Positions 21,701 through 64,000 of a stretch of DNA of 64,000 bases are shown in pieces (position 1 is the stretch's first letter; every line of letters begins with the position of its first letter). Source of the stretch: Styela clava (lineage: Eukaryota). The stretch spans positions 7,192,001 to 7,256,000 of the forward strand of contig NC_135257.1 of NCBI RefSeq assembly GCF_964204865.1, given 5' to 3'. The translations under genes and the position numbers were made by a program. The notes beneath the pieces were generated by a model, which was not told the origin of the DNA, did no database searches, and was given only the letters and a program-made list of their open reading frames with translations.

Positions 21701-24700
21701 ATTTCGATTACCAAACTTCGAGCCATTCAAGAAACGACTCCGCCTACAACCAGGTTTAAAAAATCCGAAAGCGACTTCAGCTTCAAGAAAACTCAATTTT
21801 GATCACGAAAACTTGGGCGCGTGCAAGCCTTCATCAATTGTTTCATGTCTTAAATCAGTGACTTTCAGTGACTCCGGGTAGTTTGAAAATACAACTTCGC
21901 CAGTCATCATGCAAGACTAAAGACTCCACTGCTATGGTTGTATGTAAGTTTCAATAAAGAAAGATTGCGCGATTGAAAGCAGAAATATCGCTGATGAAAA
22001 TGGTTTCGCGTTTCTAAAAGAGCTAAATACTTTTGGTCCAGTCGAAACATTTTTCAAGACAATGTCATCAGAATTTTTTACTCAAGTTAATATTATGTTT
22101 CATTCGCGATAGGTCATCCATAATGTTTTGGGTGCGAATTACATCAAATTACATCGTCTGGGAACATTAATATTACATGTAGTCTTACACAAGATAGATA
22201 TTGTAAGTAGTACTATTACATAGTATGTGATGATTAGGTAAGCATGCAAAAAACACAGTCAGTTTAATGTGATGTTGAATCATTTATACTGGGTCATGGC
22301 CAAGGTTATAATAAAAATTTTAACTTTGAAATTAATCTTTTAGTAAATTTGAAATTGTACTTTCGGTTACATCATTCCTTCGTTTTCAAATGAAGTTGTT
22401 TTGTTCTTAGGATGGATTCATCAATTCGCAGCGCGTCCAAGTAATGCGTTTGTCCAAAAGTGCGTCGCAAGAAGTATGGATAATTTCCGAGGTTTCCACC
22501 AATGTTAAGTAGGTATTAACGCTGCTATTATTGGCGTTTGACTTCGACCAAAACCCATTAATCGTTACCAGTGTTTATATAATTACAAAACATATCACGT
22601 ACAATTTAAGGTAATAATGATGAAATATGAGCGGCTACATATAGGGGTGGGCACCGTTTTCGGACCAGGAGCCAAATTTTGCCCACCTAGACTGGAGGGC
22701 TTTGTAAGTGTGGCGAAAAAGTTACATTTTGTGAACAATATTTACAGTGTTACAAAAGCAAAAGTGGAAACAAACCTCGTGCCAAAACTTAATTTAATCG
22801 AAATCTCAACAAATTCCTTGAGCTATTTTTTAGATAAAACATCGAAATTTGGTTTTAGTTGGGTTATAACAGCATAAGACGGACCAGATTGAACTACCCA
22901 AAGGCCGGATTTGGCCCGGGGTCGGGAGCCGTATATTGCCCTTGTCAGAGCTACAATCTATTCTGTTTTGTTATCAATGACGTATGTAGTGTCAAATTTA
23001 GCAAGACACGAATCCTGAATTATTTTTTTACAGAAAAATACATTTCTCTAGAATAGATGAAATCTAAATCTATATCTGAATGCGGAAGACCTCATTTAAA
23101 AATCAGCATTCACGTGATCACTATAAGTAAATAAATTTATTTTTGAATATGAGACAATTGCGATCAACGCTCATTTTCGTTGTTTTGTTGGTACACAAAC
23201 AGCGACTCCCTAAAATGGCGTTTTCATTTTTATTTTAAAGGAATAAATCCTTTCCAGAGATGGAAGCGCATATGAAATCGGCGATGACATCAAACTGATA
23301 ATAATAGAGATAATGAATTTTACATGAGCTGTATAAATTTTAGTCAATATCCATTTAGATAAGTGTGACAGGGTTGAATAAAATCGTTACATTTCATCGA
23401 CCAAATTAAATATAGAAAAGGTATACATTACCCAAGAAAAATCGTAAAATCGATGAACAGAAATACGCCTTGCATGGGACGTAATTATTTTTTTATTAAC
23501 ACTGACCGAAAATAGCGAAAATGGAATTACAGGGTAATGTGCAATGCAAAATTGAATTAGCGGTTGAATGAAATGTTCGGTTTTACAATATAAGTATGGA
23601 AGCAAGAGATTGACTTTCGCAATTACAAAAATGCAAAACATCAAATTCGGCCCAATCATGATACGACTTGATTAAGACAAGTACATTACCCAGTCATGTG
23701 AAAACTACTTATGCCGCAAAGCAGAGTCAACAATGCCAGGGCAAAATATTTTTTCAGAGGGAAGCACGATTCCCATAAACAAGTATAATTCAAGGGGGTT
23801 TTGAGAGTCACGCGGGGAGGTCAATCATAAACACTTCAAATTGGAGAAAATATCTTGGATTTGTTGGAAATAAAATTTCCCATGTATGAATGCGCTAGTG
23901 ATGTCAATGCAGTACATAAGAGATCATAATACCTAGAACTATGGTAGACTTTCTAAATTCTAATAAAATTCAAATCCCGATGGGCTATTTGAACCAGTTC
24001 ATAGCGACGAAAAAAATCAACAGAAAACAAAATTATTGGGAAGACCAGCGGGATACCACAATATCAAACGTCAAATATAATCAAATTAAATTGTGTCGAA
24101 CGTTACCACGCCGAAAACAAGTTATAAAATGCGGTTCTGGGAAGAAACGAATTACTGTTGCCTTCCTTGTAGGGCGATTGGCGCAGAGCGAGGAACTAAC
24201 AATAGATAGCTATTACGAAGTACATCACTTTTAAGGACATTCTCCTACATTGTATTCATAAACACTAATGGGTTGTTTTTGAACTTACGTAGTTTATTTT
24301 ACTGGTAAATATTCAATACCTAATTACAACCAAAAGATCAACTTACACAAAATTGAATAAAAATCCTAACATTTAGTAGGAAGTGTGTCGAAACACAATG
24401 TATTGAAATTTTATGTATTGAATTTCCATAAAAAAAAAAAATTAAAAGTACTATATTCACATCAAATTGTTCATTCGAATGAATTATCAATGCTAACAGA
24501 CGCTCTATATTTTTATAGAGGTCAAGTCAACCAAAGTCAAATTAATGTCAACAAAATTTTAGTTAAGAGCGGACAAGATCAAAATTCGCTCATGCTTCTC
24601 CGAGTTTAAAACTCACCCTGGCTATCATATTGACGATCGCTTGGTATTTGTTCTCTTTTTTGACGATGTTATGCTGTTCAAGAATTTCTAAATTTTTGGC

Positions 24701-27700
24701 AATTCTTCGTTTCATGTCTTCGAGCGGTAACTTGTTTTCAGTCAATAAGGATCTCATTTTCAGCATGTTCTTTCCGTCTTCATCTGCAGCTTTCTTCTGT
24801 TTTTCACGCTCTTCTAGTTTTTGTATATTCGCCATATGTTCCTCTTGCTGCAAATGGAAAGATATATATTTTAAAAGGTGTTGGAAATATCCACAAGAGT
24901 TTTTGAAAATCCTAACCCCAAAATAAGTCGAATCAAACATATGGAGGTTATAGGTTTCCAAAGAATGAATATTTTCGGTTACACGAACTGAAAATTTACG
25001 ATTTCGAAATCAACTCAAATCAACAGGATCGAAGATTCGTGACCTGTGTTGCAAACATAGTTTTGATGAATGTTTTTGATATGCCACCATAATGTGATAC
25101 GGCAGTATATGTATGTATACATTATTAATATATACGAAATAAAGATAATAAAAGAAGCGATGTCAGCTGCACGTTGATGCAAGATTTTCACTTAAGTGGA
25201 CAAAAAGAAAAACATTATTGTGAATAGAAAAACCATCCATATATAATACAACAGGGGTGGCCAACACGTCGACCACGACTGACCGGTCATCGGCACGTCT
25301 CGAGTAGTCGATAGCGTCTCTGATGTTTTTGAACCAGTTTCATGCAGCGCCTGTCGTGTTTTCAAAACAGCACGAATAAAGTACTGAACAGTGTACATGC
25401 GCAAAATATGATACATTAGTGATTGCATATATAATAACGGTGGGCAAACCGCGGCTCGCAAGAGATTTTATGCGGCTCTTCTCGCTGACATTAATTATTA
25501 CCCAACTTTAACTAAGAGAATCTGTAGTGTAGCAGTTTTTTTTTAAATTTATCAAGCGGTTGAAGGAGTTTTCATCAATGATTAAGACATATTATGTTTT
25601 AGTATGGTTCTTAAAACAAAAAATTTTGCCCACCCCTCGCATATACAGTACTCGAGTCTGGGCACGCCTGATTGAGCATATTATTACGCAAAAATTGCAA
25701 GTATCGCCACTGCCAAGGTGAAATGAACGTGCGGATTATCGTGTGTGTTGAATGGAAACGGTCATTCAACAATCTCTGCAGTATGCGAAAGATGTTGTCT
25801 CGCTTCGAGAGTCGTGTGATGAATTATATTCGCAACAGTAGCATCAGATTGCCCATTTTTCTTAATTCCAAAGAGCGAAAAATCGGACTTGGATGAAATT
25901 GTAAACTAGATTAGATACTGAAGTTTGAGCAGTCATGTATCATTTATGGCTTGAAGATATTTATTTTCGCTGTCTAGATAACGGGGATACTTTGTAGGTT
26001 TTTTTTTAGAGAATATTCAACACTTGCGACGAAGAATAAGGCGGGGCGCCTCAGGATAGGATTTACATATTTATCCCTTCGATTTGAATTGTGTGATTCG
26101 AATAAATCTTAAATAAGTGATGAAAATTCACTCCGATTAGAATTACACAATCAAATTAACATACTAGATGCAACATAAAAATACGAATTTTGTGGCAGTT
26201 CTCATTCTTTTCTTATGTGTGACCTTATTACCGATCAGTCGATCGCGAACGATTTTGAATATTAAAGTCGATCACGGTCGTCGAATGCAGGTTGGTCATC
26301 CCTGATATACAAGATCTGGTCTAATGAGCAGTCAGAATTAATGGAGGCCTATGAATTTTTTTTGACAAATTTGGAACACACAAATGCTAATGGAAATTAT
26401 AATTTACTACTAGAAGTTAAGAATTCAAATGGGGCGATTCAAAGAGTTAAGATATTTACTTTATAAAGTATATATAATATGGGATGTTTACGAAAACAAT
26501 TTCAAAATTTAATATACATGACATCTGAGTTTAGATATCGTTCGGAACTCTTGCGCTGTTTAGTATGACAATTCAGCTTCGTCACATCGTTCCAATTCGC
26601 GTTGTTACGATGACGAACACCGCGAATCCAGGTCGACTCTTGTGTTTAAACCAGGTTAATAACGTCACTCGCGTGTGTGAGGCAAAGAATAGCACTTTAT
26701 ATTAGATGGCGTCGTCCTATGGAATGAATTTGTACTTTGAGCGTCGAGCGTCGGCGCCGGAAGTTGTATTTGAGCGTTGGACACTGAACATTACGTTTTC
26801 GTGATGTAAGTGTATGATTTGAAACAGGGCACGAAAAATTAGATGAAGATACTATTGCGTTGGCTTTCGTAATAGTTCATTAGACAGCTTATAACGTCAG
26901 GAGACCCGTAAGAAAAGCTATGGTCTACCTAGCTATTGATAAATATAAATAACGACAGTTTTAATGGGCAGATTTTTTTATTTATTTCCAGCGGCTTCAT
27001 GAATAGGATCGCATAAAAAAATGCAAGTAAATAACAGTAAAATGCTGCCCCGTAGCTGTAAGATTACGATGCGGTGCCCTAGGGAATATGGCGAAGTACA
27101 GATCGCGACTTATTACTGGGCCAAGTGGGTAAATTTAAATTGCCACTGCAAGTCGTGCTTATCGCTGGATGCTACTATATTGAGGCAAAGTAGAAGTAAC
27201 ACGCGGTGAGATATTTTTATGGGACTGATGAGACAACGCGTGCGGTTGCAATGACATTTCTCGACGAAATAATCTAATTGTAGATATAGTATAGCCCTAA
27301 TCACTTTAGTTCGTGATATGTGTCTGTGCGAGGATGGGGCTATAGGATTTTCATTTGTAGTAACGCCAAAAATATTCGTCTCGGGCCTTATGTAATAAAG
27401 TGAGAAGTGAGAATGCTTTTCGCAGACGGTGCGGAGGAACAGGTAACAAGTCAAAAATTTTAGGTTTGAATTCTCTGATTTTACTCTGGGATGTTATTTA
27501 ATTGGATATGTTATGATTAATCAGATATGGAGAAGGCTACACGAGCCAGAGCGCAAATACAATATCACTATCAAATTCTTAAGATTTATTATTTTCACAG
27601 AACGATCAAGGCATTCAAACAAGTACGATGAAATATTTAAGAATATTACTTCTAATCCTCTTTTGTGGCTGTAGTCTTCCTCAAGGCTTGGATTCCGAAA

Positions 27701-30700
27701 TGACTACAAATGGGTCTGAATATAACAAGAACGGCGACGCCGATTCGATCAAAAAACGTACGGAAGAGCTAGGACAAGCCAATGAAAAAGAAAAACTCGG
27801 ATTGCCCGTCACTACCGAACGAACTATACAGGCTACTTATTTAATACCAACGATGGCAACGCCTAACGCAGTTATACATTCAATGATCGCAGTACCTGCG
27901 ACAATGGACAGGCCGATTCCTACAATGTCGCCGATGTCACCGTCAGGATTACGAGGTAATTCAGATACCCCGAATACGGAGGGAAAGATGAATTCAACCA
28001 CGCATGTGCCTGATATTTTAGAAGTTGGTACAACTCCAGCAGCAAATCAAATCTCTCCTTCAAGCGGGAATACATCTAAAAGTAATGCATCCAAAAGTGA
28101 AGACAAATGGATAGAGGGCCTCTGTAGTTATCCAATTTATAACAATCGTGATGCCTGTATCGGTGACTTGGACTATTATACACAGCATTTGTCACTCTGT
28201 GAGTACAGGGGTGGCGTTGTGGTGTTTGCGATTTTCGTCGCATCACTTGGATTGACTATTATTCTTCTTAACTGCCTGTTACCTATTGTAGTATGGCAAA
28301 GATCTGACATGAGAACTCAGTATGATTATATAAAAGGTTAGTATCAGAAATAAATAACGCGAAGTGACTTTAATTTCGAAGACATGAATATAGCCTTACT
28401 TTGTGCAGCAATCGAGGGAATGACGAACGTAAAAATCTTGACGCCCTTTCAAACGCGAATTGAATACGAAGTGGATTGGATGAATTTTGCAAAAAATTGA
28501 GTCAACCTAATTATTCTAGCTTACGATTTCGGACAAATGATAAAATTGAAGTGTAATCCGAAAAAACACGCTAACATACTCGTAACAGGATTAGTACACA
28601 ACAACGAAGCATAAACGATACTTCCCATGAAATATATATATAAAATCTTATGTAATGACTTTTACAGTTTCTTTAGCATTTGCGGACATGATTCCTGGCT
28701 TTTTATTACTGACTGCCGTGATACCGAACATGGTTTGGGTCAGGCAACATAGCGAAAAACAAGTGGTAGAAATGCTGCATAATGATACAAACTCTCCTAC
28801 TGCAGTCATAGTTGGATCTTTGTTGACGATGTCGGGACAGGTAAAATGATTAATTTTGAAGAAATACTTTAAAAGTATATCAGAAATACACAAGTTTCAT
28901 TTAGATATGAAGAGTCAGTAGTATAAATTTGTATATTTTGATAAAAATATGTTTTAAATAATAAATGCATGTTCGGTTCAGATTATAGTAACCACTAACC
29001 CCAGAGTTACTATCTGCCATAGTTACCAGAATTGCCCTGAGAAGTTCAACACACCACTTTGGGTATGAATATAAACGTTCTGGAAGAAATAATCATTTAC
29101 TTAATAGGCCGCCAAGTTACATGACTTTATTAAATATGGATTTGGTAGGGAAAGGAAACCTTGCAAGTTGCAACTAATTTATTATTCATTATTCACTGAG
29201 GCAACAGCAATACAATAGCACCCTTGTTATTCCATAGCTATTTATTTACAGATTTAGATTCAATTATATCCAAATGTTCCTAATTAAATCCTAAAATCAA
29301 TTCAAATTTGATTACTACATTACCACGTCAAACGAAATATCAATTATTCGTCCATAACAGTCCAAAAACTGGTTTAAAGACGATTATATCAGCAAAAAAA
29401 CTTTCATTAAATAGTGGTTAAAGAGGGTCACAAGTCAAGATCTAAAATGAGCAATGAGCAAAGAGGTCAGAGTGAAGGTGAAGTTTAAGACCTCCAGTTG
29501 CGTTCTTGTAAAACTAAGGAACGTGAAACATAAATAGTTTACTGATTGATTACACAGAATGCAATACTTGATGCTGTGCTCGGAAGGTATGCTGAGGTGA
29601 ACGGTTAACCACCTCCGTCGCTATAGTATATTAAATCGTTCATATAGAGCCAATCATATATTCTGCGGTTTTTCTAAGCAAATCTGGTATGCAAAATTAA
29701 TTTAAACGCTCGCCATATGTAATATAGCTAACTATTATGTATATAATATAATGTTAACTCGTAATGATATCTACTTTTTATTTAAATGAGTACTATAATA
29801 AGGTTTCTATGGTGTGCTTTTCCGAGGGAAGAGGGACACTCATTTCACGGTACTTCGCACAAAACTCTGCGTTCGGTGGTATAATAGGAGATCAGTAAGT
29901 TCAAGATTTGCCCACAATACGATATTTAACACTGAAATATAGCCAAACGATGGCTTCTATATTTCATTGTCTGGGCATAATTGTCAAAAAAAAAAAATAT
30001 AGTCAATTGTAACGGAGTGACGCGAATTATAAAATGTGACAAATCATAGTAGACAATCAATTCAACGCTAATACACGAGAAAACCCTTTTATGTCTTGTG
30101 ATATAAAATCGTTCGTTCTTTTTCAGGCTTCTCTTCTACACCTCATGTTCTTGAGCATCGAGAGATTTATCGCCATCACGTGGCCATTTTGGCATTTACT
30201 GCGAAAAACTCGAACGATAATTGTGACTTTGAGTTTGTTATGGATAGCTTCATTTCTATGTGCATTTGTTCCAGGTGAAGTGTATTACATATTCGAAAAT
30301 TATTTGGAATGTATTAGGAATGGAATATTAGTGTCTGTAATGTCTGTTAACGAGACAAAATTTTGTCAATAAATGTACTCACTAAAATATATTATTTTAT
30401 CTATTTTCAGCCGAATTTCCGCAATACTTCGAATACATATTTCAACCATCTTTGTTAATTCACTACATGACGTTGAAAACAATAATTGGAACATCGGGAA
30501 AAGTAGAATACGGAATACATGGCCCTCTGTACACGTCGATTACCATGATTCTACCTTTTACAATTATGGTAAGGGTTCATTATGGAAACGAGCATAGTAG
30601 TGCGATAGAATGGGCAACATATATCAAACAATATTTACGACAGGGTTTCTCTAACAGAGCCCCGGTATTTTGAAAGGGCAGGGGCCGAAATGGGGCACAG

Positions 30701-33700
30701 ATAGATCATGGAGGTTTGAGAACCACTCTAGCATGGCCGAAATTGAATTTATAGAGATCTGGCTTTATTATTTATGGTATCCAAAAACTGACAATCTTTG
30801 AAATAATGAACTGGATAGTTATTCCAATGTCAGAATCGGCGACCAAACAAGAGGCGTTGGGCTTGTATGCTGTACCCTGATAAATAAGAAATACTAATAT
30901 GTTCTATCGCACAGTGTCAACTTTTGGAATAAAGGACCGGATAGTTTTTCTAATGCCGGAACGGCGACCGGGCGAGAGGCGTTGAGCTTGTACTGCTGTA
31001 CTGATAGATAAATAAATAAATAGGTAATACTAATATGTTCTATCGCGCAGTGTTTGATCATCTTTGAATTAATTACCCTGTGCTGTGTGTAAGCGTGGAT
31101 TTTGAGTTCTAAAACTATCTAAACCGATATTTCTTGTCATTTCAGTTGGTGGTATGCATTTTGACGGGTATTTCATCATACAGGAAATTGAAATCGAGAA
31201 CAAAAACATTTAGAGCCGGCGGAAAGTTTCACGCCGCTTCTGGCTCGGCTGTTGTCGACGGTAAACAGTCATCCACTGGCGTGGATGCAGAACCCCGACT
31301 TAAACCAACGACAAGCTTACGACAAAAATTGCGGCCCGAAGTGTCAGTATTCATTACTATTGTGACAATGATTATTGGATTCACAGTAACCATACGTAGG
31401 TTTATTTTTTAAAACAAATTATATGAGTGCCTTGTCCAATACTCTCTCTTGATATGCTAGAGCAGCTATACAGTGCCTTTGGAATGTTGATCGTTGAATT
31501 GAAAGGAATCATCACACAAATTCCTTTTATGTGATGGTATCAAATCAACTCGTATGTGTGGCATTAGTGGATAATCCTGACAGACAACATCATTTGGGAA
31601 TTCTGTTGTACTAAGCCACGGAACTTGATGAAAGCAATGTTTTCTTGAAAATACAGACAAATTATCAGGAGCATACTGGTTCTTTTAATTAGTCTTTTGG
31701 CGACCATCGACTACTTTTATGGATGATTACTTTTCAGTTGATTCGAATTAAGACCACAGATTCCCCGAGTCAACGCGATCACAAACAAAACAACACCTTA
31801 TACAAAAAATCCTAATTAAATTATATGCATTTTTAGTTCCCTTTGGGATCGTTTTGATCCTATTTGTAGCGAAGACGTTGACGTGTTCAACATACACTAC
31901 TTCATTCGTTCTTACATTCTACGGCGGCCTAGCTAACGGGTAAGTAATCTAGATTTGTATTCTATTAATCAAACTAAATCAACAGCGAAGTACATGCATA
32001 AATGAATATACCAATATAAATATGCGCTCCAGAAGTGTACGTACCAATATGGAGGGAACTGATTTTGTTCGACTACTCTACATCAAGTTGTGTAAAGCGA
32101 CGGAAGACTATGAGCAGGTGGTATATTTACTGGGCTGACACAGAACTCGTAATAGAACCAAAATAGGGAAAATCGGAATAAAATTATGGCCTTACCCTAA
32201 CCTGGTACACATACTACAGGAGTATAAATATTCATTCATTATCCTTTCAGCCTCATCAATCCGATAATTTACAGTTTTCGAGACGAAAGATTCAGAACAG
32301 CAGTTAAGAAGCTATTTAGCAAAAGATCAGAAAATAAGCCTATGGCGACCACGACTACCAACGCATCAAGTGGAAGTTGTAATTCTAAATTATGATAGTG
32401 CGGAATCTTATACAAGTTACAACCATTAAACGCAAAAAATTCATCACGTAAAGAAATGAAAAATCAAAGACCAAAATATTGAACATATTTGCTTGATATT
32501 TTTACTGAACGATGTTGCCTGAGCTCCGTAAAAGAAATGACACGCAGAAGTAGATTTGGGAGCTGCTGGTTTTAGTAACTCCGTATGAGGCGCAGAGTTT
32601 GGGCTAAGCAATAATCTTTTCGGAGTTGGAACCAGAGGACTTCAGACTCAGATGACCAAAAACGCTCCCCATGGATTTAGCTTGTAGGAAAATGCTACCG
32701 AATCATACATTTAACTTAGGTTTCCAGTGTTGAATAGAAAGTATACTTTTGAAAATGAGATATCAATAATAATCAAATGCCAATTAATGTGGTGACGACT
32801 GACGTGGTGTTCAGGGACTCGTTTTACTATAAAAGCAATTCTGATATTGATATACAATCAGAATACTGACAGTGTGTACCCTTTGAATTGCATATAATGT
32901 TGTTTTTATCGTGAAAATGGTATATTTCGTATTATGTGGTGAGGATAAATTTTGATGAATAAACCTCAATTTATTAAGTAAACAATAGCGTTTTTGGGTT
33001 TTTATTAACATACCCGGTGTACGTCATTCGTACAGGATTTGAGTATAATAGATACACTTAATGGCTGACACAAATCCTACAAATGAAAATACAACAGAAA
33101 GGTTTTTGGAATAGGGGTCAGAAAAGTAAAAATTACGAGTATATTAATTCTACGCTTTCAAGTGTTTAGTAAACAGATTACAAGTCAAAAAACGATCCGA
33201 TTATTCAGGCAGCGTTTGGGCTTGAAGTAAGGCATGAAGATTGGGGTTCTGACTGCGTTTACGGTACAAATGACATCATCTTCATGAGTGGTTCTCAAAC
33301 GGTGGGGCGCCCCCCACAAAAGGGGCGTAGACAATTTTTGAGGGAGCGTGGAGCTAATTGAAATGAAAATATTTATTAGATTTGATCTTGTACGCCTTAT
33401 TTCGGCGAATTCAAAATGGGAATTCCGCATCCTTCCCAAATCTTGATGAGGCATTCGGCAACATGCCTAAGACATTTATTTCAATATTTACGTTCCATCC
33501 ACGTATTTTCTGCGTGTTTTTGGATAATACATACTTTCGGCTCACTATTCGTTATTTGTAGCTTACTGTCAGCTAGTTATGTTTGAGTTGGGGCGCGAGA
33601 CTTGATAAATTCTGGCGGCTAAAGGGGCGGATTAAAAAGTTTGAGAACCACTATCTACGTGATATCATATTCTGGGTTTTCACAATAAAATACTGAGTGG

Positions 33701-36700
33701 TAGTATATTATGTACTGAGTTGGTGGTATCCGATACAGCCTGATCGAGGGAAGCCCAAATTATCCGCTTGTCGTCAGATTGGCCTTTGCTTATATTGCCA
33801 CTTAGCTTGACGATAAAAAAGGTGATCTATTTTGATCAACATCAGTCCGTATTCACCCTCCAAAGTTATTTGTGAATTGTGAGCGTAGCAGTATCTAATC
33901 ATTATTTTGTTTGAACGAAAACGAGTAATATGGCCGTTATAGCAAAAACTGGGAAAACAAGTGTCAACGAGCTCAATTTAAAAAAATTATATGTGGTGGC
34001 TCTATTTCACCGCAACGTGAATAATGCACAATCTTGCAGAATTGATCAATGAGTCCCACGTTTTTCAGTTTTCCTCATATAAACTGCTTTAAATTGTCCC
34101 AATCATTTGTCTACGATAAAGAATCGAGAATCGAGATGATCATACATGTTGCCTTTACTTTTAAGCACAACACATTCAAAAAATAACTATGGCGATGCGC
34201 TAAAGCTGTAAAACTGTTACGGCAATACCTTTGAAAATCAGTCATACCGACCCATATTTGTAAATGTATTGTCGCGAGAGAAAAGATGGCGAACGTGACA
34301 CGAGATAACTGAAGTAATTTAAGTCCATAGTTGAAGGAAAGCATCGAGGTGGGAGATTTTGATCGCCAGGACCCAGTTTAAACCACTATTAAATCCGATA
34401 AGGGTTGGGAGTACGAGTAGTCCCAATGTGGCACTATAAGTATTATTGCAATATCTATTTATGCACACAATCACACATTATGAAAAGTTCAAAATGAGTA
34501 AAACCGAGTTGCGCGTATACCTAGCTAAGGATTCTTAAAATGTTAAACAAATAACGAACATAGGATTTTCTGCATAGTGATTCAAATCATGCAAAGGTAG
34601 GAATATACAGGGTTAATGGGTTGGGAACCACTGCTCTAAATGCTCTATCATTGAGCTGTCTAATCAAGAAATCGACAATGTACTTCAGGCGGAAACTCAA
34701 TGTCTGAGTGTTTATTAATACGGACCGAATATTAGACCAATCAGAATGTAGTAATTACGGTAGTTATAAATTCATCAATTTCAACCGGAAACACCAAAGT
34801 GACCGACGCGTTGGAGTATGCTGTGCGAAACGCAAATCGGCAGACCATTTAAGAAAACGACGTGCCAAACAGCACGTTATAAATGTACAGCACGTTACAG
34901 ATGTCAATGCAGACGTGCTGTTTCATTAAAGCAATCAAACGTGTTGATAGAATAAATGTTGATCGTGGCGTTCATACCTGACAGTTCAGTTAGAATGAAG
35001 CATTGCAGCAGACAGGGGTTTACGTAAGCAGTCAATAATACCGGGTTTAGTGGGGCTTTATATTTTTAGTTGAACAGACCAAGCAGAGTTTTGCCCTGAG
35101 CCAAGCTTTATATTTTTAGTTGAACAGACCAAGCAGAGTTTTGCCCTGAGCCAAGAAGTTCAAGATGGCCCGACTTCTGACCAGAAGCCAGGGCGACCCG
35201 TCTAACTCCAACGAAGCCAGCGGGGTGATCGATGAAAGGTTATGGTCAATCAATATCTGTTGCAAAATTTCACTCCAATGTAATGCAATATGCAAAGTTT
35301 GAGAGTTTGCATCGTGTTCAGGATGCATATTCGCCGTCTAGGAAAAATAAGACGGCACGGCAAATCAAGGACCAACACATGAAATTTATTTAATTGGTTT
35401 AAACTTTACACAGATATTTCAAAATATATGTGATATACAAGTGATATTTCAAAAGTCACGCCCAAACAAAAATATGATCTGTTTTCAGCTCTGTTAAATA
35501 GCCCGAGTCAAACTTATAACTCAAAGACATTTAACACGAATTGGAGAGTCATCGGTACTGTGGGTAGCGCGTAAGATACGGTAATAATGCCAACGGAAAC
35601 ACGACATGTTAATATTTGTAATTTGGATTTGAAATGTTTCGTCTGTGTTGATGACGAATCTAACACTTTCAGGCGATTGTATAAAGCAGAAGTGGCCAAC
35701 CTGGTTTCGACCGCGATCGACTAAAATCTTCAAAATAGCTCGCGATCGACTGATCTGTAATAAGGTAATACACTAAAACGAATGAGTATTGAATATGCAG
35801 ATAACTAACTACACACATGCATAGAAAAATTCCACGGCTGCCAATAAGCACGGCTGCCAATAAGCTCGGCTCTGTGGGCGCATTCTTACTGAAATCGACA
35901 AAAAAATTTGTATTTTCATGTTCCATTCAATTTTTTGATTTGATTGATTATGTACTTGTTTATTTGTACCCGAAGAATTCCTCAAAAAACTTGCGTAATC
36001 ACAAGTAATCACGTATTATTTAAACAACAAAAAATGAATATTCTCAAACCATAAATGTTACATGACTAATAAAACAGTATCTAATTTACAATTTTCTCCA
36101 AGTCCGATTCTTCGCTCGCTTGGAATTAGAAAAAAATTGGGCGGGCATTCTGATGTCACTGCTACCGTTACGAATAAAATTTATCACACTACTCTTGGAA
36201 GTGGGACAATAACTTTTGCATATTGCAGAAATTATTGTAGGATGGTCTGTCAGGCAATCAAGACACGTGATATTCGGCACGTTCATTACTAAATTTTGGC
36301 AGCGGAGAAACCCGCATTTGTCACGTGATAGTATGCTCTATCGGACTTTCCCACCCTCAAATAGTGTATATACATTATACAGTACTGTATTCTTCCTGTT
36401 TTAATACACACAACAGGCGCTGCATGAAACTGGTTCAGGCCATTTTTTTGGAGTATGTTTTTAAATTCACTCAACATAAGACGTGATCGACTACTCGAGA
36501 TGTGGCGATCGATCAGTCGATCACGATCGACGTGCTGCCCATCCCTGGTATAAAGTAATGTAGATATTAACATACACTTTATCGTAATCCAATACAAAAG
36601 CGTTTAAATAAGACATCACTCGGAACGAGGCTTTGCACAATAATCTACTGATATGCTACTATTTATGGAATAAACGGTTTGGCATTGCCCGAACCACAGT

Positions 36701-39700
36701 TTTGCTGGTCCCGTGGTCAGATTATATCAATGCATGACTGGACTACAACATTTCCATATAAATAATCTATGACCACCAAGTTATCTATAGATGATACTTC
36801 CACGAAGCTTGAAAATAAAAAGAAGTGACGTCAGCAGTCAGTATTTTCAAGAATATTTTTTCTATATGTCAGAGATGCGGTGTCATTTGGTGATGAACGA
36901 TCGACAAAAATAGACGCTTTATTAGTCGATTTGTATGAAATAATAGGGGCGATGTGGTTGAAATTGAAGTCCATTAGATAGCCTTGGGCGCAGAAGTGAG
37001 AGACTCTTAACTTACAACACTTAGCATTTCAGATCAGCCTAAAATTGGCTTGACGTGATATTTTAGCTTGTAGGCAAATTATTCAGGATAGACGTTAATT
37101 ATAACGTTCGACTCGAACAGATAATAGGACGCAGAACTATAATCTAAATTTCAGTAGATTGTTTTGAAAAGAAAAATATTGAGTACTGAAGAGTTTAGCG
37201 TAAAACTAGTGAAGTTGGTTTTCTAACAGCATGGACCTGATAAATTTAATGATTGAATAATTTGTGATCGATGTATACTATCTTTCTATGACACAATGAT
37301 AAAATGCGCTAATAACGTGACAGAAGTTAATTAATAAAGCTAAGTTTCAAGTAACGAACAGTACCACATAGGAGACGGTGTGACGGATTAGTATATTTGG
37401 TACAGAAATAGGTTTATGTATTTATTCCGTTGATGTTGAATTCAATTCGTGGTCAGATTAAATTTTGTTTTTCATTTTTAATATCAATATAGATTTATTC
37501 GCGAAACAAGCTCCCAAAAAAATTAACATTCAAACCCATCTGTATAGAAGAAACGAGCACTACCGCAAGTGCACGTGCAAGTGCAATTAATATATAATAA
37601 GCAGAAAATTTTACAAGGTTTTCCGGAAATGAGGTGGTAACTACAGGAGAATAATACAAGGCGACGCGTTGATTAGGTTAATAATAGCAAGAATTTGTTT
37701 TCATTCGATAATTGTGTCGTTTGTCCTCGATGGAGTGCGAAATTACTGTACTACATGTGTCAATCCAAAACTGAACACATAAGTGTATTGGTAGATATAT
37801 TAAAGAAATATTGGGAGAGCATTTCATAATAAGACATAAAGATAGACCGGTGACAGACTGGATTTGTCATGTCTACGAACTTATTTAATTAAAGTCATGT
37901 CTACGGACTTATTTAATTAAATTAACTTACTTATTGCCTACAATAAATGAGTTTTAATAGCTAATCGAATAAATTACAATACGAATAACATTTTAAAAAA
38001 TATCGAGTATATTTTAAATTAGTTCATGTCCAGCAAAGAAAATTGTCAGAAATTGTTGCATCCAGTAATGAAAATAACTTTACATAGCATAGCATTCTGT
38101 CACTGATAGTATATTGTTAGTTATAGTGTTAAAGTATATATAATACAGAAGTTGGGATGAAGATTTTTTTCTTATTCTCTATTTTTACAATACAAGTTTA
38201 CAATTGCAAGTTGAAGGAAGTCTATTTTCGTCTGACCATGCGATGTCAAGTGCTCAAAATGAAGAAATTTTGAGATGAAAATATTCTTCATAGTTCAAAA
38301 ACCAAGAATTTGCTGTACCGAATATAATTGATTCTAATATTGATTCGTTATGGGCATCCCTGCATACTCTTATATAACATTCAAAACATGTTGCCTATAG
38401 GAAATTCGGTAATTATCGCTTTGCGCAACATTCATCCCACGCATGCAAGTTATTTGTCGTGTTATCGGCGCTGAGCTGTTAGGCCAACACAGAGTCATGC
38501 GGGAAGGATTAACAACTTAATTAAAGTATTTTTTCTGAATTAAGATTTAATTAGCAATCTAGAGTTTATCTCTTTTCGAATCCTGGCGTAAACTGAGCCT
38601 GAATACAGTTTAATGGTTATGCTCTTATTTCGATTAGTTTTCCTGGTTGTGGTATGTGGAAGTAATGTTACAATTGGAGTGAAAAACACCGAAGGTGATT
38701 TACTTGCGGAAGACAATTTCGGCTTTATAGACAATGTCAACCCTGACAACAATGGACATGTATTGGACAATACCGTGAATGGGATTGTAAATTCGCCAAT
38801 GATTTTAGATGACAACATTGTGGAAGACACGGAAGAGAGTTCTTCAAATGATCTGCTTACACTCGACATGGTGGAGCAAAGCGCGGTTACTTCAAATATC
38901 ATGCTGCAACCGAGCACACCAAATCCAACTATGTATGGGTATGGTATAAATCCATTTTACAGTGAGGTACTAGATTTAACATTGGCACCAGAAATCGATG
39001 TCGTACTTCCCGATAGCTTTGCCATGACAAATGAGGATCACCCGAGCAAGCTGAGGATGGGAAATGAGGTGCAAATAGACCTGAAACAGGCATTGCCGAT
39101 TTTCAATGAAACGACGCAAAAACCAGAAACAACAACAAAAAAAGACAACTCTCGCGTACTGGGCCTCCGACCGTTTCACGGAATTGCGATACCACCCGGT
39201 GTCCCTATTCCACCCGGTGTCCCTATTCCACCCGGTGTCCCTATTCCACCCGGTGTCCCTATTCCGCCCGGTGTTCCTATTCCACCCGGTGTCCCTATTC
39301 CACCCGGTGTCCCTATTCCACCCGGTGTCCCTATTCCACCCGGTGTCCCTATTCCACCAGATGTGCCAGACCATTCAAGCACCTCAACAACGACAAAATC
39401 AACAACGACCACGGTAACTAGCACGAATTCCAGATCAATCGCACCGCATCCACCAATACCGAGACTGCTACAACCGAAAAAACCAACAGAACGTGCAAAA
39501 CCTAAAACTTCAACAACCTTAAAACCGACGACTATAAAAAGCAAACCATCCATACCTACGAAAATAACGCCAACAAAATCGACAATTCAAGCTGGCACGC
39601 CAATGGATTTTCAAAGAGGGATGATACCAGTAGTAGATGTAGACTCTGGGCCGACAACTTCATCACAAAAAATCGAGCATACAACATCAAACATTACGAC

Positions 39701-42700
39701 ATTCGAAGCCGATAACTCAAAAACCATAGTGATTGAACTAAACCCAATAGCAGGACGAGATATATTTCATAACACAAGTCTTATCGAGAAATTTAATAAC
39801 AGTGATAATTCGGATACGCGTGATCAAGTTACTGTAGTTTATCGGATGTGTGGATACCCTTCTATATGCGATCAAGAAACTTGCATATCACTTGACATAA
39901 GTAGTGATACCTTGGAAGAGTGTGAAATACGGGGAGCGAAAGCAGGATTCGTTTTTGTCGTAATCATTTTATCACTAGCGATTATAGTAGGGAACAGTTT
40001 GCTACCGTTGGTACTGTGGAGAAATCGAGAATTGAGAAGTCATCACAATTTAATGAAAGGTGTGTAATAATGCTGTTTTGAGGGAGAAAGACTTGGAAAT
40101 ACTTATTAATAACCTGGAAATAACGACAACAATGTGCAGAAATAACGTTAATTGTATCACGCAAATTAACATGCATACACATCACGATTCCAGATAAATT
40201 TATCATTCATTATACCTAAAATGAAGTCGTGATAAAACATGTACAAGTAATAGATCATTTGTGTGGGGAAATACGTCAACAAGCATTATGATGTTGCGTT
40301 TTTTTAATTAACCAAAGGCTTTGATTAAAAATAATCGAATCGCGATAACATATTGCATATAAATAAATATGCAAATTACCAGTGACGGGAATATCACCAA
40401 CATAGCCATATTGAAAATATTTGGGTATATCTCTAAATTAGGAATAATAGAATCGAGACAATAAATTTGACTTTTCTTGGCTATAAAACGCCAACAACAC
40501 AGTTTTTTTACGATTTCAGTTATGTCGGGTAGATTGGCTTGGAAAGACCCCAAAATAAGCAAACAGATATGGAAGTGTCCCAAACTGTTAGTATTAGAGT
40601 TATGTTGGAGATTGTCTCGCAAAACGACCGATGAACGAAATATAAAACTTTAATGACGTATAAGTAATATTTTAAAATTCGCTTTGGCGAGAAAGCCGAT
40701 TGAAGTAAATATGATACCGGACATTTTTAATCGGAATTTCATTACAATTCAGTTTCACTTGGATTTGCTGACATGATAACTGGTTTGATTCTCCTGTTCT
40801 CCGTTATTCCCAATGTTATCCGTACGATGCAAAGCACCGAACAACAGTTAGCTGAAGAGGATAGAGATATGACGAATTCAGCCCAAGCTATAATAGCCGG
40901 TTCAATGCTAACTTTATCAGCACAGGTTCGAAAATGATTTATAACTAGAAATAAACTACGAAACGTTGGCCTAATTGAAAGTATGAATCTAATAACCAAT
41001 AAAAAAAAAACGTTTTCTGACATTTGAAATGATAAGACTTTTCGATTTCAAAACATCATTAATTTCAAAAATAACAATTTGCTTTGCAAATATGGTTTAC
41101 CCAAAACCATACTTTTGGATCATTCTAAAAGTCATAGTATGTTTAATTCTCTTATTTTTTTGAGTGATTTTTCATATAAAAATATACCATGTTCTTGCGA
41201 GATTTTCATTGAGACAAATACAGATTACTGCGAGAATTTTTGCAAACAGTCAAAAACGAGTATTGATGAACCATTGTCAAAGGCAGCTACTCGCGAGTCG
41301 CGACCGGGTCGTAATAAGAGTCGATTTATGCATTATTGTCTCGCATTAGAAACATTTGTAACACTACTCGATTCCGATCAATTTCATGTTTACTTTTCAC
41401 AGGCTTCATTGTTTCACTTGACATATCTCAGCGCTGAGCGTTTTGTTGCAATTAAATGGCCTTTGTGGCACCGAGTGAGAGGACCAAAGTCTCTTTCATC
41501 GCAAATTTTGTCGGTGTGGGCAGTTTCTATCATAGTGTCTTTTCTACCAGGTAAGAGATGAAACCAAATATATATTTACATAACACAGTCGCTGTAGAAA
41601 TTAAATAAGGCATGGTGGATCAAACGTTGTAATACGATCAATAACGAATATTCTCCAGCGGTATATTCGGTATAGTGCGTTCGAAATTTCCGTAATATTT
41701 GTCATAAATCTTGAATATTTCGATTCAACTAGTATACGTCTCATTATACCTGTGAACTGTGATGATGACTTCGCAGAAAATTATTTTCGAGTTTTTACAT
41801 CAAATACGATATGACTACTTTTAATATGATGACGTATACTATCTGAATATAGAACGCTGTAATTTGCCTAAAATAATAATTAATTATTAAATAATTTCGT
41901 CTTTGATGATGGGTATATTCCCGGAAGTGTTTTCGACACAAAGTTTCGATTTTAAACAACCGTAAAATCTATTTTGTGAAAGATGACATGAAAGCGAACT
42001 TATAAGTGCGTCAAAATTACGTTTTAACTTTGATTGTTTTGCGTCACAATATAGGTAGACTCAGACCGCCAGATCAATGAATTACATAAGTAACTTTCAT
42101 ACATTACAGCTGCTTTCAAGTATCAATTCTCGTTTCGATATTTGCCTGTATTATTCGTCTACATAATGACAGCAAATGGATCCGAAACCAATGCGGAAGG
42201 AACGGCCTATATTGTGATAACCATGGTGATACCATATATAGCCACGGTAAGATGATAATTTAAGCCATATATACCGGTATTTCGATTTAAAATCTTAATC
42301 TTAAAAAGTTAATTTTTTGTGTTAAAATACGCAAAACCTAATAAAATGATGTGTTCTAACTATCCAGATAGGAATTACATTAGCCTCAAATCATTCTGAT
42401 GGATTTCAAAAAGGGCAGGTTGTTGTTGTTTACTTTCGAAACGCTTATGCTTCGATTATTTTAAATTATTTATGGCATTTAAATGATGTGTTATTATATA
42501 AACTTGCAATAAAAAACAAATTAAACCCCGCGTCACCAAAAGCAATATAGAGAAACCAGGGCATGAATATTACCTCCGCCATCAGGACATTAATAACTGT
42601 ATAGTATAAACTTTTCACGTGAAGACTTTCACATGCTAAAGCGATTAATATATTACCTATTCGTTACCAGATAACATTTACGGCACTAACCGGGGTAGTA

Positions 42701-45700
42701 GTATGGTGGAAGATGAAATCAACGGCACATATGAAGCGTTATTCCACAAGAAATCATCGAACTACGAACGGTGGTATAGGATCCCAGACCACTTCCGGGT
42801 TCAAACTAGCGAGTAACGGACGATATCAATGGGATGATGCCGATAACACAAAACCGGAACTAAAGCCGGAAGTAGCGGTGTTGAAGACCCTAACGATTAT
42901 GATTGCTGCCTTTAGCATAACACTACGTAAGTTTACTTTCGTAGCTGCGAGTGACCCATTGCATATTAATAATATATTTGTATATCACTATTTTACTGCC
43001 AGTATTTCAACCGAAAGATTTGAAAATTCTGTGAATTAACCCTTCTTTATTGCATTTTCAGTTCCTTTCATAATAGTTGTGATTCTATTCTACGGTGAAC
43101 AACTGGACTGCGTAAACTACTCTATGCCATACACAATTGCCTTCTACGCCTGTATGTCGAACAGTTTTGTAAATGTATTGATATATACAGTACGAGACCA
43201 AAAATTCAGAAACGGTTTACATAATGTCTTTCGACGACGAGGGGCTAGTCAAATATGGAGCTCTAATTCCAATCAAGGAAAAAAAGGAATGACGATGAGT
43301 ACGAGTATCGAACTCACACCCCATCCAATACAAATGGAGAATGGAGAAAAATTTTCCAGTAGAACATCTGGCAAAGAAAGATGGGAAAGAGCCTTGGTAG
43401 GGATGTGAAGGGTAAGAAGGAGAACAAGACAGAAAAATGAAGAGCGGGATACATTGACACGGCACCGCGATGTAAAAAAATAATCTGATCTACCGGTCTC
43501 AAACTAATGAATCAAACAGATATGATCCCAACATTTAAACAAGGTACAACCAAGGTACATCAGTTTAAAAACAAGTCTACAGACATAATGAATTGAATTA
43601 GTGAACTAATTGTACAGTATTCTTTCATTTTGAGATATTATAACAATCAGTATGTGCATTGAATATTTTTTTGTACAGAATCCAACATTCAGTGTTATAT
43701 TTTATCAAGTACAGCGGTAAAATAATCTATTGCTGCTTTTTTTTATTTTTTTTTTTATCAAGATCTTTTCAATTCATTCTTTTTAATAATTTTTTTACGA
43801 TTTTATTGCACATAAATGGAGATTTTCGAATAAAAGTATGCAAAATGAGAGCAAATATGATCTTGAATTGTCATGAAGAGCATCGTAGTAATGTAATTAA
43901 ATAGTAGATATATATATATATATTCATTAGGATACAGTTAAAACCTATATGTAAAAGAAATTTTAGGAGAAGGTGACAAAACCTGATTGCTATTCAGTTG
44001 ATAGATAGATATTCATTCAAATCCTGTCATTACTCAACAATCAAAACAGAAAACACAATTCGAATTCTCAGGACATATACAATCGACTAATACCAGAATT
44101 AATAAGTACCTAGGTTGGAGGGACCAATCGGTCACCAAATTGAAACAATTCTCCTTGCATGAATAAGTCGATAGACGTCTATACAGTGTAATTATACCAT
44201 TTATAAATCATGTCAATTTGTTGTTGCTATAATTATCATGCTATCGTTATATAATACATACAGACTTACTTCAAGTTCAACATTGCTAACATTTCGGGTT
44301 CGCAGGTTTGAGGATGAGTGGCCGTGGTTCGCTATATGATAAAACAGTCTCATCACTTTTCCTCTCCCCCGGAATGAATATGTAAATCCTATCCTATTTG
44401 ATTGAATCTATGTTACAAACCTGATGATCTGTTGCTTCAGTTTCCAATAGTTGAACAAGATTGTCGCCAGGTTGCACTCGAATCACGTCTATTATCATTC
44501 TCTTAGTTCTGAAAAAGTAAAAAGAAGACTATAAAACAAACCATAGCTCTTGAGTTTATGGGACAACTGGAACCTTGGGTGGCCAGAACCAGTCAAAACC
44601 TAATAATCTACTATTCCAAACACGCTCTAAAACAGTGGACGGCAAACTTTATGTACTACTGGGCCAAACATGCACATTGATGGTAGCGTGCGGACCATAT
44701 TGGTTTATAAACAATCGCCACCTTAAACTTCATATCATGACGTTCTTATTACTCATCGATCTTAAGATCGGTAAGTATGTTGATAGGTATTTGTCTGTCT
44801 GTATGTCTGTTTGTCTGTGTGTTAGATGCACGCGATATCTCACGAAAGCGATGTTGAATCCTGCTCCAAATTTTGCATGTGCAGCCATCATAGCTCGGAT
44901 CAGAAGCCTATAGATTTTGGATGGATTATGTCTTATAATTAGCGAGTTATTAATTAATTAGTGATGGGACACACGGTGTCACTATGGAGTAAGACCGCTG
45001 TTTTGGGGGATCCCCTAACCTTCGATCGATAAGTCTACGGTTTCTAACCGATATTCTAGTTTCTGTGTTAATCACAACCAACGGTGGCAAGTAATTGACA
45101 TACAACTGACAATTTTTGCTTATTCTAATTACCGGTACTACAAAACAAACCCGTAAAACAGCTATTGTTACGACATACATCCGTGGTGCGCAGATGATAA
45201 TAAGTTTACAAGCAACTTTTGTTTTTTTAAGCATTAAAAGTGAGGTTTTGGGGGCCACAAAAAGGAGGGAGGGGGCACGAGCCGCAGTTTGTCAACCCCT
45301 TTCTCTGAAATAAGGTTTTGTAAAGGAATATCAAGTATATATTCTAAACTGGATCCTGCACCCTTTGGGAACCGCTGTTTTATACAATAATTTACCTGAG
45401 TAATACATTTCTCACATCACCATCATCATCTTCCTTTACTTCTATTCTGTTCAGCAATGTTAGTGACACTTCAGTATTACCCAGTTGTTCCAACTGTTTC
45501 TCATCTTGTTCACCTTCACCTGAAGCTTGTGAAGTATCACCACCTGATGAAAGATAAGTAAACCATATGGAAAGTCAAGGCAGTTGGAAGATAAAATGGT
45601 AAAACTCAAAGATACTTTTTAAACCACAAAATAAGTTTAAATATGCATAATTTTTTAATAGTCATTAATAAAACTGACAACTAAATCATAGAATGAGCAT

Positions 45701-63894: not shown

Positions 63895-64000
63895 CTTGTA
63901 GTAAATAAATAACAACCAGGTCAGAAATAGAAAACATTGTCATTTGTCACAGTACATATATATAGTAGATTGCAGTACATATAATATAGAGTAGGAAGGA

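Follow-up and report, generated by a model that had tools for sequence, protein, structure and literature searches.

Tunicates are the sister group of vertebrates. Lineage-specific expansions of receptors of the LGR and LDLRR-GPCR type with reshuffled N-termini have been described in tunicates, and a survey of the G protein-coupled receptors (GPCRs) of Ciona listed 23 "Other Rhodopsins" thought to be ascidian-specific; tunicate lineage-specific receptors of this "other rhodopsin" kind have been left unclassified since that survey (PMC2396169). GPR37 is a class A receptor with a long disordered N-terminus (PMC12315979), and proteolysis regulates the ectodomains of long-N-terminus class A receptors such as GPR37 and the beta1-adrenoceptor (PMC12315979, PMC5554155). 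Here we analysed a 64,000-nt stretch of the Styela clava genome (contig NC_135257.1, positions 7,192,001 to 7,256,000; G000:C9:7192001-7256000 in our numbering; "the window" below) that contains two spliced, intact, paralogous class A GPCR genes on the plus strand, gene 1 and gene 2. In both, a cysteine-bearing segment of 29-30 aa, which we call the Cys module, lies directly before the first transmembrane helix (TM1) and follows a long stalk. The explanation that we favour, with reasonable though by no means full confidence, is that the two genes are tandem paralogs from a small orphan ascidian family of 7tm_1 receptors in which the module serves as a lid or hinge and the stalk as a spacer or shield.

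The module has the pattern C-G-[YF]-P ... C ... C-E. Its family-wide signature, C-G-[YF]-P-x(3-7)-C-x(10-13)-C-E, ends at most ~5 residues from TM1 and is carried by the TM1-encoding exon. The initial annotation of this DNA had noticed that both receptors share a Cys motif before TM1; the motif is indeed present in both window genes and in all seven Styela paralogs (7/7), but its first cysteine is not invariant, occurring in six of the seven. Strict invariance is confined to the central cysteine and the terminal C-E, and family members have between 2 and 5 module cysteines. Among the other residues, conserved positions are found in G-Y-P, L-[DN] and P-L-x-x-C-E. A hidden Markov model (HMM) of the module only (37 positions, without TM1) scored non-Styela members at 15-54 bits, compared with 7.1 bits for the best of 1,020 shuffles and with 0 bits or less for the three reported outgroup class A receptors. 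Because the module is kept in 7/7 Styela paralogs and the module-only HMM scores lie above those of the shuffles, it is not a chance match.

An AlphaFold2 (AF2) model of the gene 1 product, run with a 41-row family alignment, assigns predicted local distance difference test (pLDDT) values of 83-96 to residues 160-195. The module is modelled there at high confidence with two short helices (residues 174-179 and 188-191) and beta-bridges, and it continues straight into TM1 (residues 196-224). Pfam and NCBIfam searches with both first exons and with full-length members gave no match to the module, the only hit being a spurious sub-threshold one to Nlp36 over TM1. Against Protein Data Bank (PDB) sequences the module-only profile had no match at E<=10 and the profile of module plus TM1 had nothing significant, and the ESM Atlas returned only short unnamed GPCR-like fragments for the module+TM1 region. 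A literature search found no paper that names the loci or accessions or describes the module. The earlier suggestion of a possibly undescribed module thus agrees with the absence of Pfam, NCBIfam and PDB-sequence matches, and the combination of a juxtamembrane Cys module with interchangeable ectodomains appears to be undescribed so far in ascidians.

The seven-transmembrane (7TM) core is of class A. Pfam 7tm_1 matched residues 215-521 of P0002, which is almost identical to the gene 1 product, with 77.8 bits (cutoff 30.5, E 1.2e-21); it was also above cutoff in P0017, P0027, P0025 and P0026, and reached 32.6 bits on the gene 2 exon that encodes TM3-4. Only 7tm_1 and related class A models were matched, with no Pfam match to 7tm_2, LRR or LDLa and none to GPS/GAIN at E<=0.1-1 in exon 1 of either gene or in full-length family members, which bears out the original reading of a class A core that lacks a GPS motif. 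The core keeps N1.50, D2.50, ERF at the DRY position, W4.50, P5.50, P6.50 and N(P/V)xxY; the corresponding motifs are LN/GN in TM1, SLAFAD, ERF, LLW, ILPF, LPF and either NPIIY (gene 1) or NVLIY (gene 2). W6.48 of the CWxP motif is absent from the family core. Also absent are the cysteines of the canonical disulfide between TM3 (position 3.25) and the second extracellular loop (ECL2), neither gene having a cysteine at the top of TM3 or in ECL2. This disulfide is typical of class A receptors but not universal, and melanocortin, EDG and cannabinoid receptors are likewise without it. A single cysteine in ECL3 is usual in the family and is found in 5/6 full-length lineages.

The AF2 model of gene 1 (predicted template modelling score 0.69) aligned by VIA-align to the beta1-adrenoceptor over 277 residues with Z 28.1, a root-mean-square deviation (rmsd) of 2.7 and 23% identity. 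A single-sequence PDB search matched the D1 dopamine receptor (E 2.8e-10), the beta2-adrenergic receptor (E 2.2e-9) and, over TM2-TM4 only, RXFP1 (7tmw, 1.2e-8). With the family profile, beta2AR, D1R, A2A and the orexin receptor OX2R were nearly equal at 1e-23 to 1e-19, and no LGR was among the best 60 matches. Identity of the core to aminergic and adenosine receptors is only ~20-24%, and a word-index protein search with the family alignment returned only generic class A receptors at ~20% identity. The paralogs carry automatic NCBI names that are mutually inconsistent ("dopamine D2-like", "high-affinity LPA receptor-like", later "NPY receptor type 2-like", and "uncharacterized") and that, because they conflict, do not reflect real orthology. 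The initial annotation had raised the case of a characterised receptor standing in 1:1 orthology to the pair; none was found, the D1 match being the best PDB relative, and judged by sequence the family is a divergent orphan class A clade without a characterised 1:1 ortholog. A melanocortin-like identity was also considered and rejected: the Styela "mc4r-like" gene of PMC11430673 is a different, 389-aa gene (XM_039403826) that lies outside the family.

Everything that precedes the 7TM core, together with TM1 itself, is encoded by exon 1 alone in each gene: a signal-like N-terminus, a stalk rich in Ser, Thr and Pro (S/T/P) and the Cys module. The hydrophobic N-terminus of both products (MKYLRILLLILFCGCSLPQG... 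in gene 1) is typical of a signal peptide and is taken here as a putative one. Measured from residue 21 in both cases, the stalk is 145 aa long in gene 1 and 392 aa in gene 2, and TM1 starts at about residues 196 and 443, respectively, in line with the one-exon ectodomains of ~190 and ~440 aa that had been noted at the outset. Combined S+T+P content is 32% in the stalk of gene 1 and 34% in that of gene 2, as compared with 20-23% in the remaining protein; the stalks also contain several N-x-S/T sites, and their glycosylation is predicted. Disorder is predicted for the gene 1 stalk, with AF2 pLDDT below 50 for residues 15-143 and 145-149. When the first exons of the two genes were compared by tblastn, only the last ~90 aa aligned (E 1e-13, 32% identity) and the stalks gave no alignment, as had been judged by eye.

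Identity is lower in the stalk than in the module plus TM1 in each comparison made: 41% (with 150 gap columns) versus 79% between gene 2 and its ortholog fragment P0001, 36% versus 74% between gene 1 and the paralog L002, and 74% versus 90% between the tandem paralogs L002 and L003. By this measure the stalk is evolving much faster than the module, as the initial annotation had supposed. The gene 2 stalk carries a (PPGVPI)n tandem repeat that is missing from P0001, which makes it a species-specific repeat. Transcript-like contigs end at this repeat; since they break there, its copy number may vary or be mis-assembled. Across the family the segment upstream of the module ranges from ~20 to 412 aa, with an S+T+P content of 17-38%.

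A search of the 377-Mb Styela clava assembly with the module+TM1 piece and with the TM2 exon recovered the identical seven loci (L001-L007), all on the contig of the window (C9), six of them at 7.22-7.60 Mb and one at 11.7 Mb. Since both queries find the same loci, the module and the 7TM clade go together in 7/7 Styela genes; an eighth, very weak match to the module+TM1 query (E 0.1) has no module in an open frame. L002 and L003, separated by 7.5 kb, are a tandem pair of recent origin, and the open frame of L004 (11.71 Mb) begins without an evident signal peptide. We then ran profile A1, made from the seven Styela loci (95 positions), with HMMER over 1.84 billion representative proteins, which gave 34 clusters at E<=1e-3, 23 of them at E<=1e-10. 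Origins were looked up for 28 of the 34 clusters; all those that carry a species name are from Styela clava or Clavelina lepadiformis, and no Ciona protein was among those 28. Clavelina lepadiformis belongs to a different ascidian order from Styela. The family has so far been named only from ascidians, and the lineage-specific receptor family that had been proposed is consistent with this distribution. Word-index searches added one Logan ortholog fragment (P0001) for the gene 2 module region and found only the query itself for P0025.

The members outside Styela differ in what precedes the module. Some have a short N-terminus, P0017 and P0027 being almost without a stalk. The predicted Clavelina proteins P0026 and P0040 (CAK8686673.1 and CAK8686668.1) have a signal peptide and nine Sushi repeats ahead of the module, and Clavelina-type members carry a five-cysteine variant, C-G-x-P-G-F-C-x(6-9)-C-x7-C-x2-C. 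In the P0026 and P0040 models the C-terminal half of one family receptor is joined to the signal peptide, Sushi repeats, module and a second 7TM, most likely because annotation merged two tandem genes; Clavelina would in that case possess class A receptors with Sushi repeats. Comparison of the predicted proteins shows the segment upstream of the module to be replaceable, with a mucin-like stalk, a short N-terminus or Sushi repeats in that position.

Both gene models are intact. Gene 1 has seven exons, all flanked by AG/GT, and encodes 561 aa; its joined coding sequence (CDS) translates exactly to P0035, that is RefSeq XP_039271368.2, labelled "uncharacterized protein LOC120345858 isoform X1". 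For gene 2, for which no database protein was found, the exon set was defined from spliced contigs: six exons give an open frame of 835 aa in a local frame check, and all five introns (5/5) are GT..AG and are spanned by spliced transcript-like contigs from three public runs of one study (X1-X3). These runs were labelled "RNA?" by guess, and the intron-less contigs are themselves cDNA. As contigs without introns cross five GT..AG joints, gene 2 is transcribed and spliced, and contig depth is low in its introns. Searches for gene 2 were made with single exons. A pseudogene or a mis-assembly is ruled out by the intact open reading frames, the canonical splice sites, the spliced transcripts and the cross-species conservation of the module.

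Some further contigs and loci touch these gene models. At window positions 40004-40530 and 41521-41995, parts of gene 2 introns 1 and 3, contigs of low depth were seen (3-11, versus 40-160 on exons), and the intron contigs show several single-nucleotide polymorphisms and small indels relative to the window; pre-mRNA or genomic carry-over fits these low-depth contigs. RefSeq holds two near-identical loci for gene 1 (P0002/P0035, LOC120345758 and LOC120345858), a few residues apart, whereas just one of the seven family loci in the present assembly corresponds to gene 1. This suggests that the RefSeq assembly contains both haplotypes as duplicates or that a duplication has been collapsed in the present one.

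In the explanation that we favour, the module would be a small lid or hinge, stabilised by disulfides and N-glycosylated, that packs on the extracellular face beside TM1 and stabilises the vestibule in place of the missing TM3-ECL2 disulfide; one of its cysteines may pin it to ECL3. The cysteines of ectodomain and ECL3 add up to an even number in gene 1 (3+1), P0041 (5+1), P0027 (3+1) and the Clavelina protein (5+1). The stalk would probably be a glycosylated spacer or shield, and either the stalk or its replacement may position the receptor or gate access to it, with signalling presumably through heterotrimeric G proteins as in other class A receptors. Regulation by shedding, in the manner of GPR37 (PMC12315979) or the beta1-adrenoceptor (PMC5554155), may also occur. 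Several observations weigh against this explanation. Cysteine parity is odd in gene 2 (4+1) and P0017 (3+0), and the Styela paralog L004 has a proline in place of the first module cysteine. In a second AF2 run the module of the distant member P0027 reached a pLDDT of only 56-75, and a confidently modelled fold is so far specific to the better-sampled Styela type. The five-cysteine Clavelina-type modules score near shuffle level with the module-only HMM, their homology coming through the module+TM1 profile only. Finally, most family matches are from unlabelled Logan, ENA or JGI assemblies, so that "ascidian-restricted" rests on few named members.

One alternative derives the module from the hinge of LGRs (glycoprotein-hormone or relaxin receptors), of whose segment directly before TM1 ("Cys-box 3 / ...NPCE-x-x-x-G-Y") it would be a degenerate leftover; the receptors would then be LRR-less LGR descendants and the remnant a tethered agonist or inverse agonist that is released or repositioned when the ectodomain is engaged. 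The best PDB match of the module+TM1 profile, although non-significant, is to an LGR-type chain (8w1z, E 0.35), in which the family "...CE-x-G-G" is aligned with "PDALNPCENIVGY" directly before TM1, and TSHR is next (E 0.66). VIA-align runs into the module for FSHR (8i2h, Z 27.3, model residues from 159 on to FSHR residues from 344 on) and TSHR (7xw7, model residues from 163 on), RXFP1 is among the top single-sequence PDB matches, and Ciona has 14 LRR-less "Unclassified LGR-like" receptors with no recognisable N-terminal domains (PMC2396169). The FSHR overlap is unspecific, however, since the alignments of CB1, CB2, 5-HT1B and CCR5 enter the module region as well; no module match is significant, the search with the module-only profile having come back empty; and it is aminergic, adenosine and orexin receptors, not LGRs, that rank first with the family profile. 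LGRs moreover retain the TM3-ECL2 disulfide that the ascidian family is without. We regard descent from an LGR hinge as unlikely. The CCR5 alignment, which reaches model residue 160, is also what might be expected if there were no autonomous domain at all and conservation were explained by a cysteine-bearing N-terminal tail with one disulfide to ECL3, in chemokine or melanocortin receptor style, and an N-glycosylation site. The ECL3 cysteine in 5/6 full-length lineages and the restriction of invariance to two cysteines and a glutamate are consistent with such a tether. It is harder to reconcile with ~30 conserved residues, non-cysteine positions included, and 3-5 cysteines, which exceed what a single tether needs, with the two helices and beta-bridges modelled for gene 1, or with P0017, which has the module and no ECL3 cysteine; a simple tether has a small chance of being the whole account.

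A different possibility, which takes up the mechano-, glycan- or protease-sensing tentatively suggested in the initial annotation, is convergence on adhesion-GPCR-like behaviour, whereby the stalk transmits force or is shed by proteases and the module then activates the class A core. A putative signal peptide, a long glycosylatable stalk and a compact juxtamembrane element together give the receptors a superficial likeness to an adhesion GPCR, adhesion-type Sushi repeats stand in for the stalk in Clavelina, and ectodomain cleavage is known to regulate the long-N-terminus class A receptors GPR37 (PMC12315979) and beta1-adrenoceptor (PMC5554155). The stalk is nonetheless not essential to the family, given its range from ~20 to 412 aa and the almost stalkless P0017 and P0027, no conserved cleavage motif was identified, and neither a GAIN/GPS domain nor a 7tm_2 core is present. 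Convergent behaviour of this kind is in our estimate quite improbable, and what survives of the "adhesion-like" architecture in the initial annotation is a loose, superficial resemblance. Going further, the module might act as an autonomous switch domain of a new extracellular type, being a lid or tethered agonist through which the upstream part, mucin stalk or Sushi repeats, gates the class A core; to this we give very little credence. The same slight weight is all that we attach to the accompanying proposal that such a switch domain would be convergent with the adhesion-GPCR Stachel and the hinge/P10 of glycoprotein-hormone receptors and would have originated among the invertebrates most closely related to vertebrates.

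Both receptor genes lie antisense within one intron of a minus-strand IQGAP gene. The features of the two receptor genes and the exons of their host gene are collected in the table below.

Table. Features of the window, with positions counted from its first nucleotide; TM, transmembrane helix; ECL and ICL, extracellular and intracellular loop; TRF, Tandem Repeats Finder.
Feature	Position	Strand	Evidence
Gene 1 exon 1: signal-like peptide, S/T/P-rich stalk, Cys module, TM1, ICL1; phase 1 end at G|GT donor	27628-28336	+	CDS = P0035/XP_039271368.2; AF2
Gene 1 signal-like peptide	27628-27687	+	sequence reading
Gene 1 S/T/P-rich stalk	27688-28122	+	composition, AF2
Gene 1 Cys module, residues 166-195; three Cys (C166, C177, C191), then E192	28123-28212	+	alignment, HMM
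Gene 1 exon 2: TM2 with SLAFAD, ECL1, start of TM3	28668-28840	+	CDS match
Gene 1 exon 3: TM3 with ERF, ICL2, TM4	30127-30274	+	Pfam 7tm_1 1.7e-8; CDS match
Gene 1 exon 4: ECL2, first part of TM5	30411-30568	+	CDS match
Gene 1 exon 5: rest of TM5, ICL3, first part of TM6	31146-31395	+	CDS match
Gene 1 exon 6: end of TM6 with LPF, ECL3 with C496, start of TM7	31837-31939	+	CDS match
Gene 1 exon 7: NPIIY, helix 8, C-tail, stop codon	32251-32395	+	CDS match
Gene 2 exon 1: signal-like peptide, mucin-like stalk, Cys module, TM1, ICL1	38613-40059	+	spliced contigs; P0001 = ortholog of exon
Gene 2 signal-like peptide	38613-38678	+	sequence reading
Gene 2 mucin-like stalk	38679-39848	+	composition
Gene 2 (PPGVPI)n tandem repeat in stalk, 18 bp x 9.3	39192-39358	+	TRF, 97% matches
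Gene 2 Cys module, residues 413-441; four Cys (C413, C419, C424, C437), then E438	39849-39935	+	alignment
Gene 2 exon 2: TM2 with SLGFAD, ECL1	40753-40925	+	spliced contigs X1-X3, GT..AG, frame check
Gene 2 exon 3: TM3 with ERF, TM4	41403-41550	+	spliced contigs, frame check
Gene 2 exon 4: ECL2, start of TM5	42110-42246	+	spliced contigs, frame check
Gene 2 exon 5: end of TM5, ICL3, start of TM6	42671-42926	+	spliced contigs, frame check
Gene 2 exon 6: end of TM6, ECL3 with C737, TM7 with NVLIY, helix 8, tail, stop codon	43062-43408	+	spliced contigs, frame check
IQGAP exons, overall	21400-25009 and 45395-63946	-	
IQGAP WW exon	63725-63946	-	
IQGAP IQ motif exons	62099-62278 and 61198-61386	-	
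IQGAP RasGAP exon	50064-50321	-	
IQGAP RasGAP_C exons	24593-25009 and 21400-21726	-	

With a conserved Cys module and TM1 joined in one exon, one unclassified group of tunicate receptors is now delimited by a searchable signature. If the module is indeed a lid or a tethered regulator, the family would be a compact natural case of class A receptors that replace the ECL2 disulfide and gain ectodomain-dependent gating, and Styela clava, an invasive fouling species, would offer seven testable orphan receptors. If it is not, the family would join the other orphan GPCR subfamilies that have an elaborate N-terminus.

Class A GPCRs whose N-terminus bears a lineage-specific addition are well known as a kind, and the family can be set beside several described systems. 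With aminergic and adenosine receptors (beta1- and beta2-adrenoceptors, D1, A2A) it has the 7tm_1 fold and motifs in common, and these are the best sequence matches, with structural alignments at Z 28 and rmsd 2.2-2.9; it is set apart from them by ~20-24% identity, the missing TM3-ECL2 disulfide and W6.48, and a long ectodomain with a Cys module and a putative signal peptide. GPR37 and GPR37L1, the endothelin B receptor and the O-glycosylated beta1-adrenoceptor combine a signal peptide and a long, largely disordered, glycosylated N-terminus with a class A core, much as is predicted for the ascidian receptors, but receptors of the GPR37 type keep the canonical disulfide and have no conserved juxtamembrane Cys module, and no sequence relationship to them was found. 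Adhesion GPCRs (class B2) resemble the family in their mucin-like or adhesion-repeat ectodomain, compact element at TM1 and, in the ascidian proteins putative, signal peptide; they differ in having the GAIN/GPS autoproteolysis domain and a 7tm_2 core, where the ascidian receptors have 7tm_1. The LGR-type receptors (FSHR, TSHR, LHCGR, RXFP1) and the Ciona "LDLRR-GPCR / Unclassified LGR-like" receptors also have a modular ectodomain and a Cys segment ending in C-E before TM1, whereas the ascidian family has neither LRR nor LDLa, its hinge similarity is non-significant and its core is not preferentially LGR-like. In chemokine, melanocortin and cannabinoid receptors the N-terminus is bound to ECL3 or holds a disulfide close to the membrane, and its cysteines give the extracellular vestibule its form; the alignments of CB1, CB2 and CCR5 reach the module region. 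Compared with these receptors the ascidian family shows no N-terminal sequence similarity, and its module is longer, with 3-5 cysteines and a motif specific to the family.

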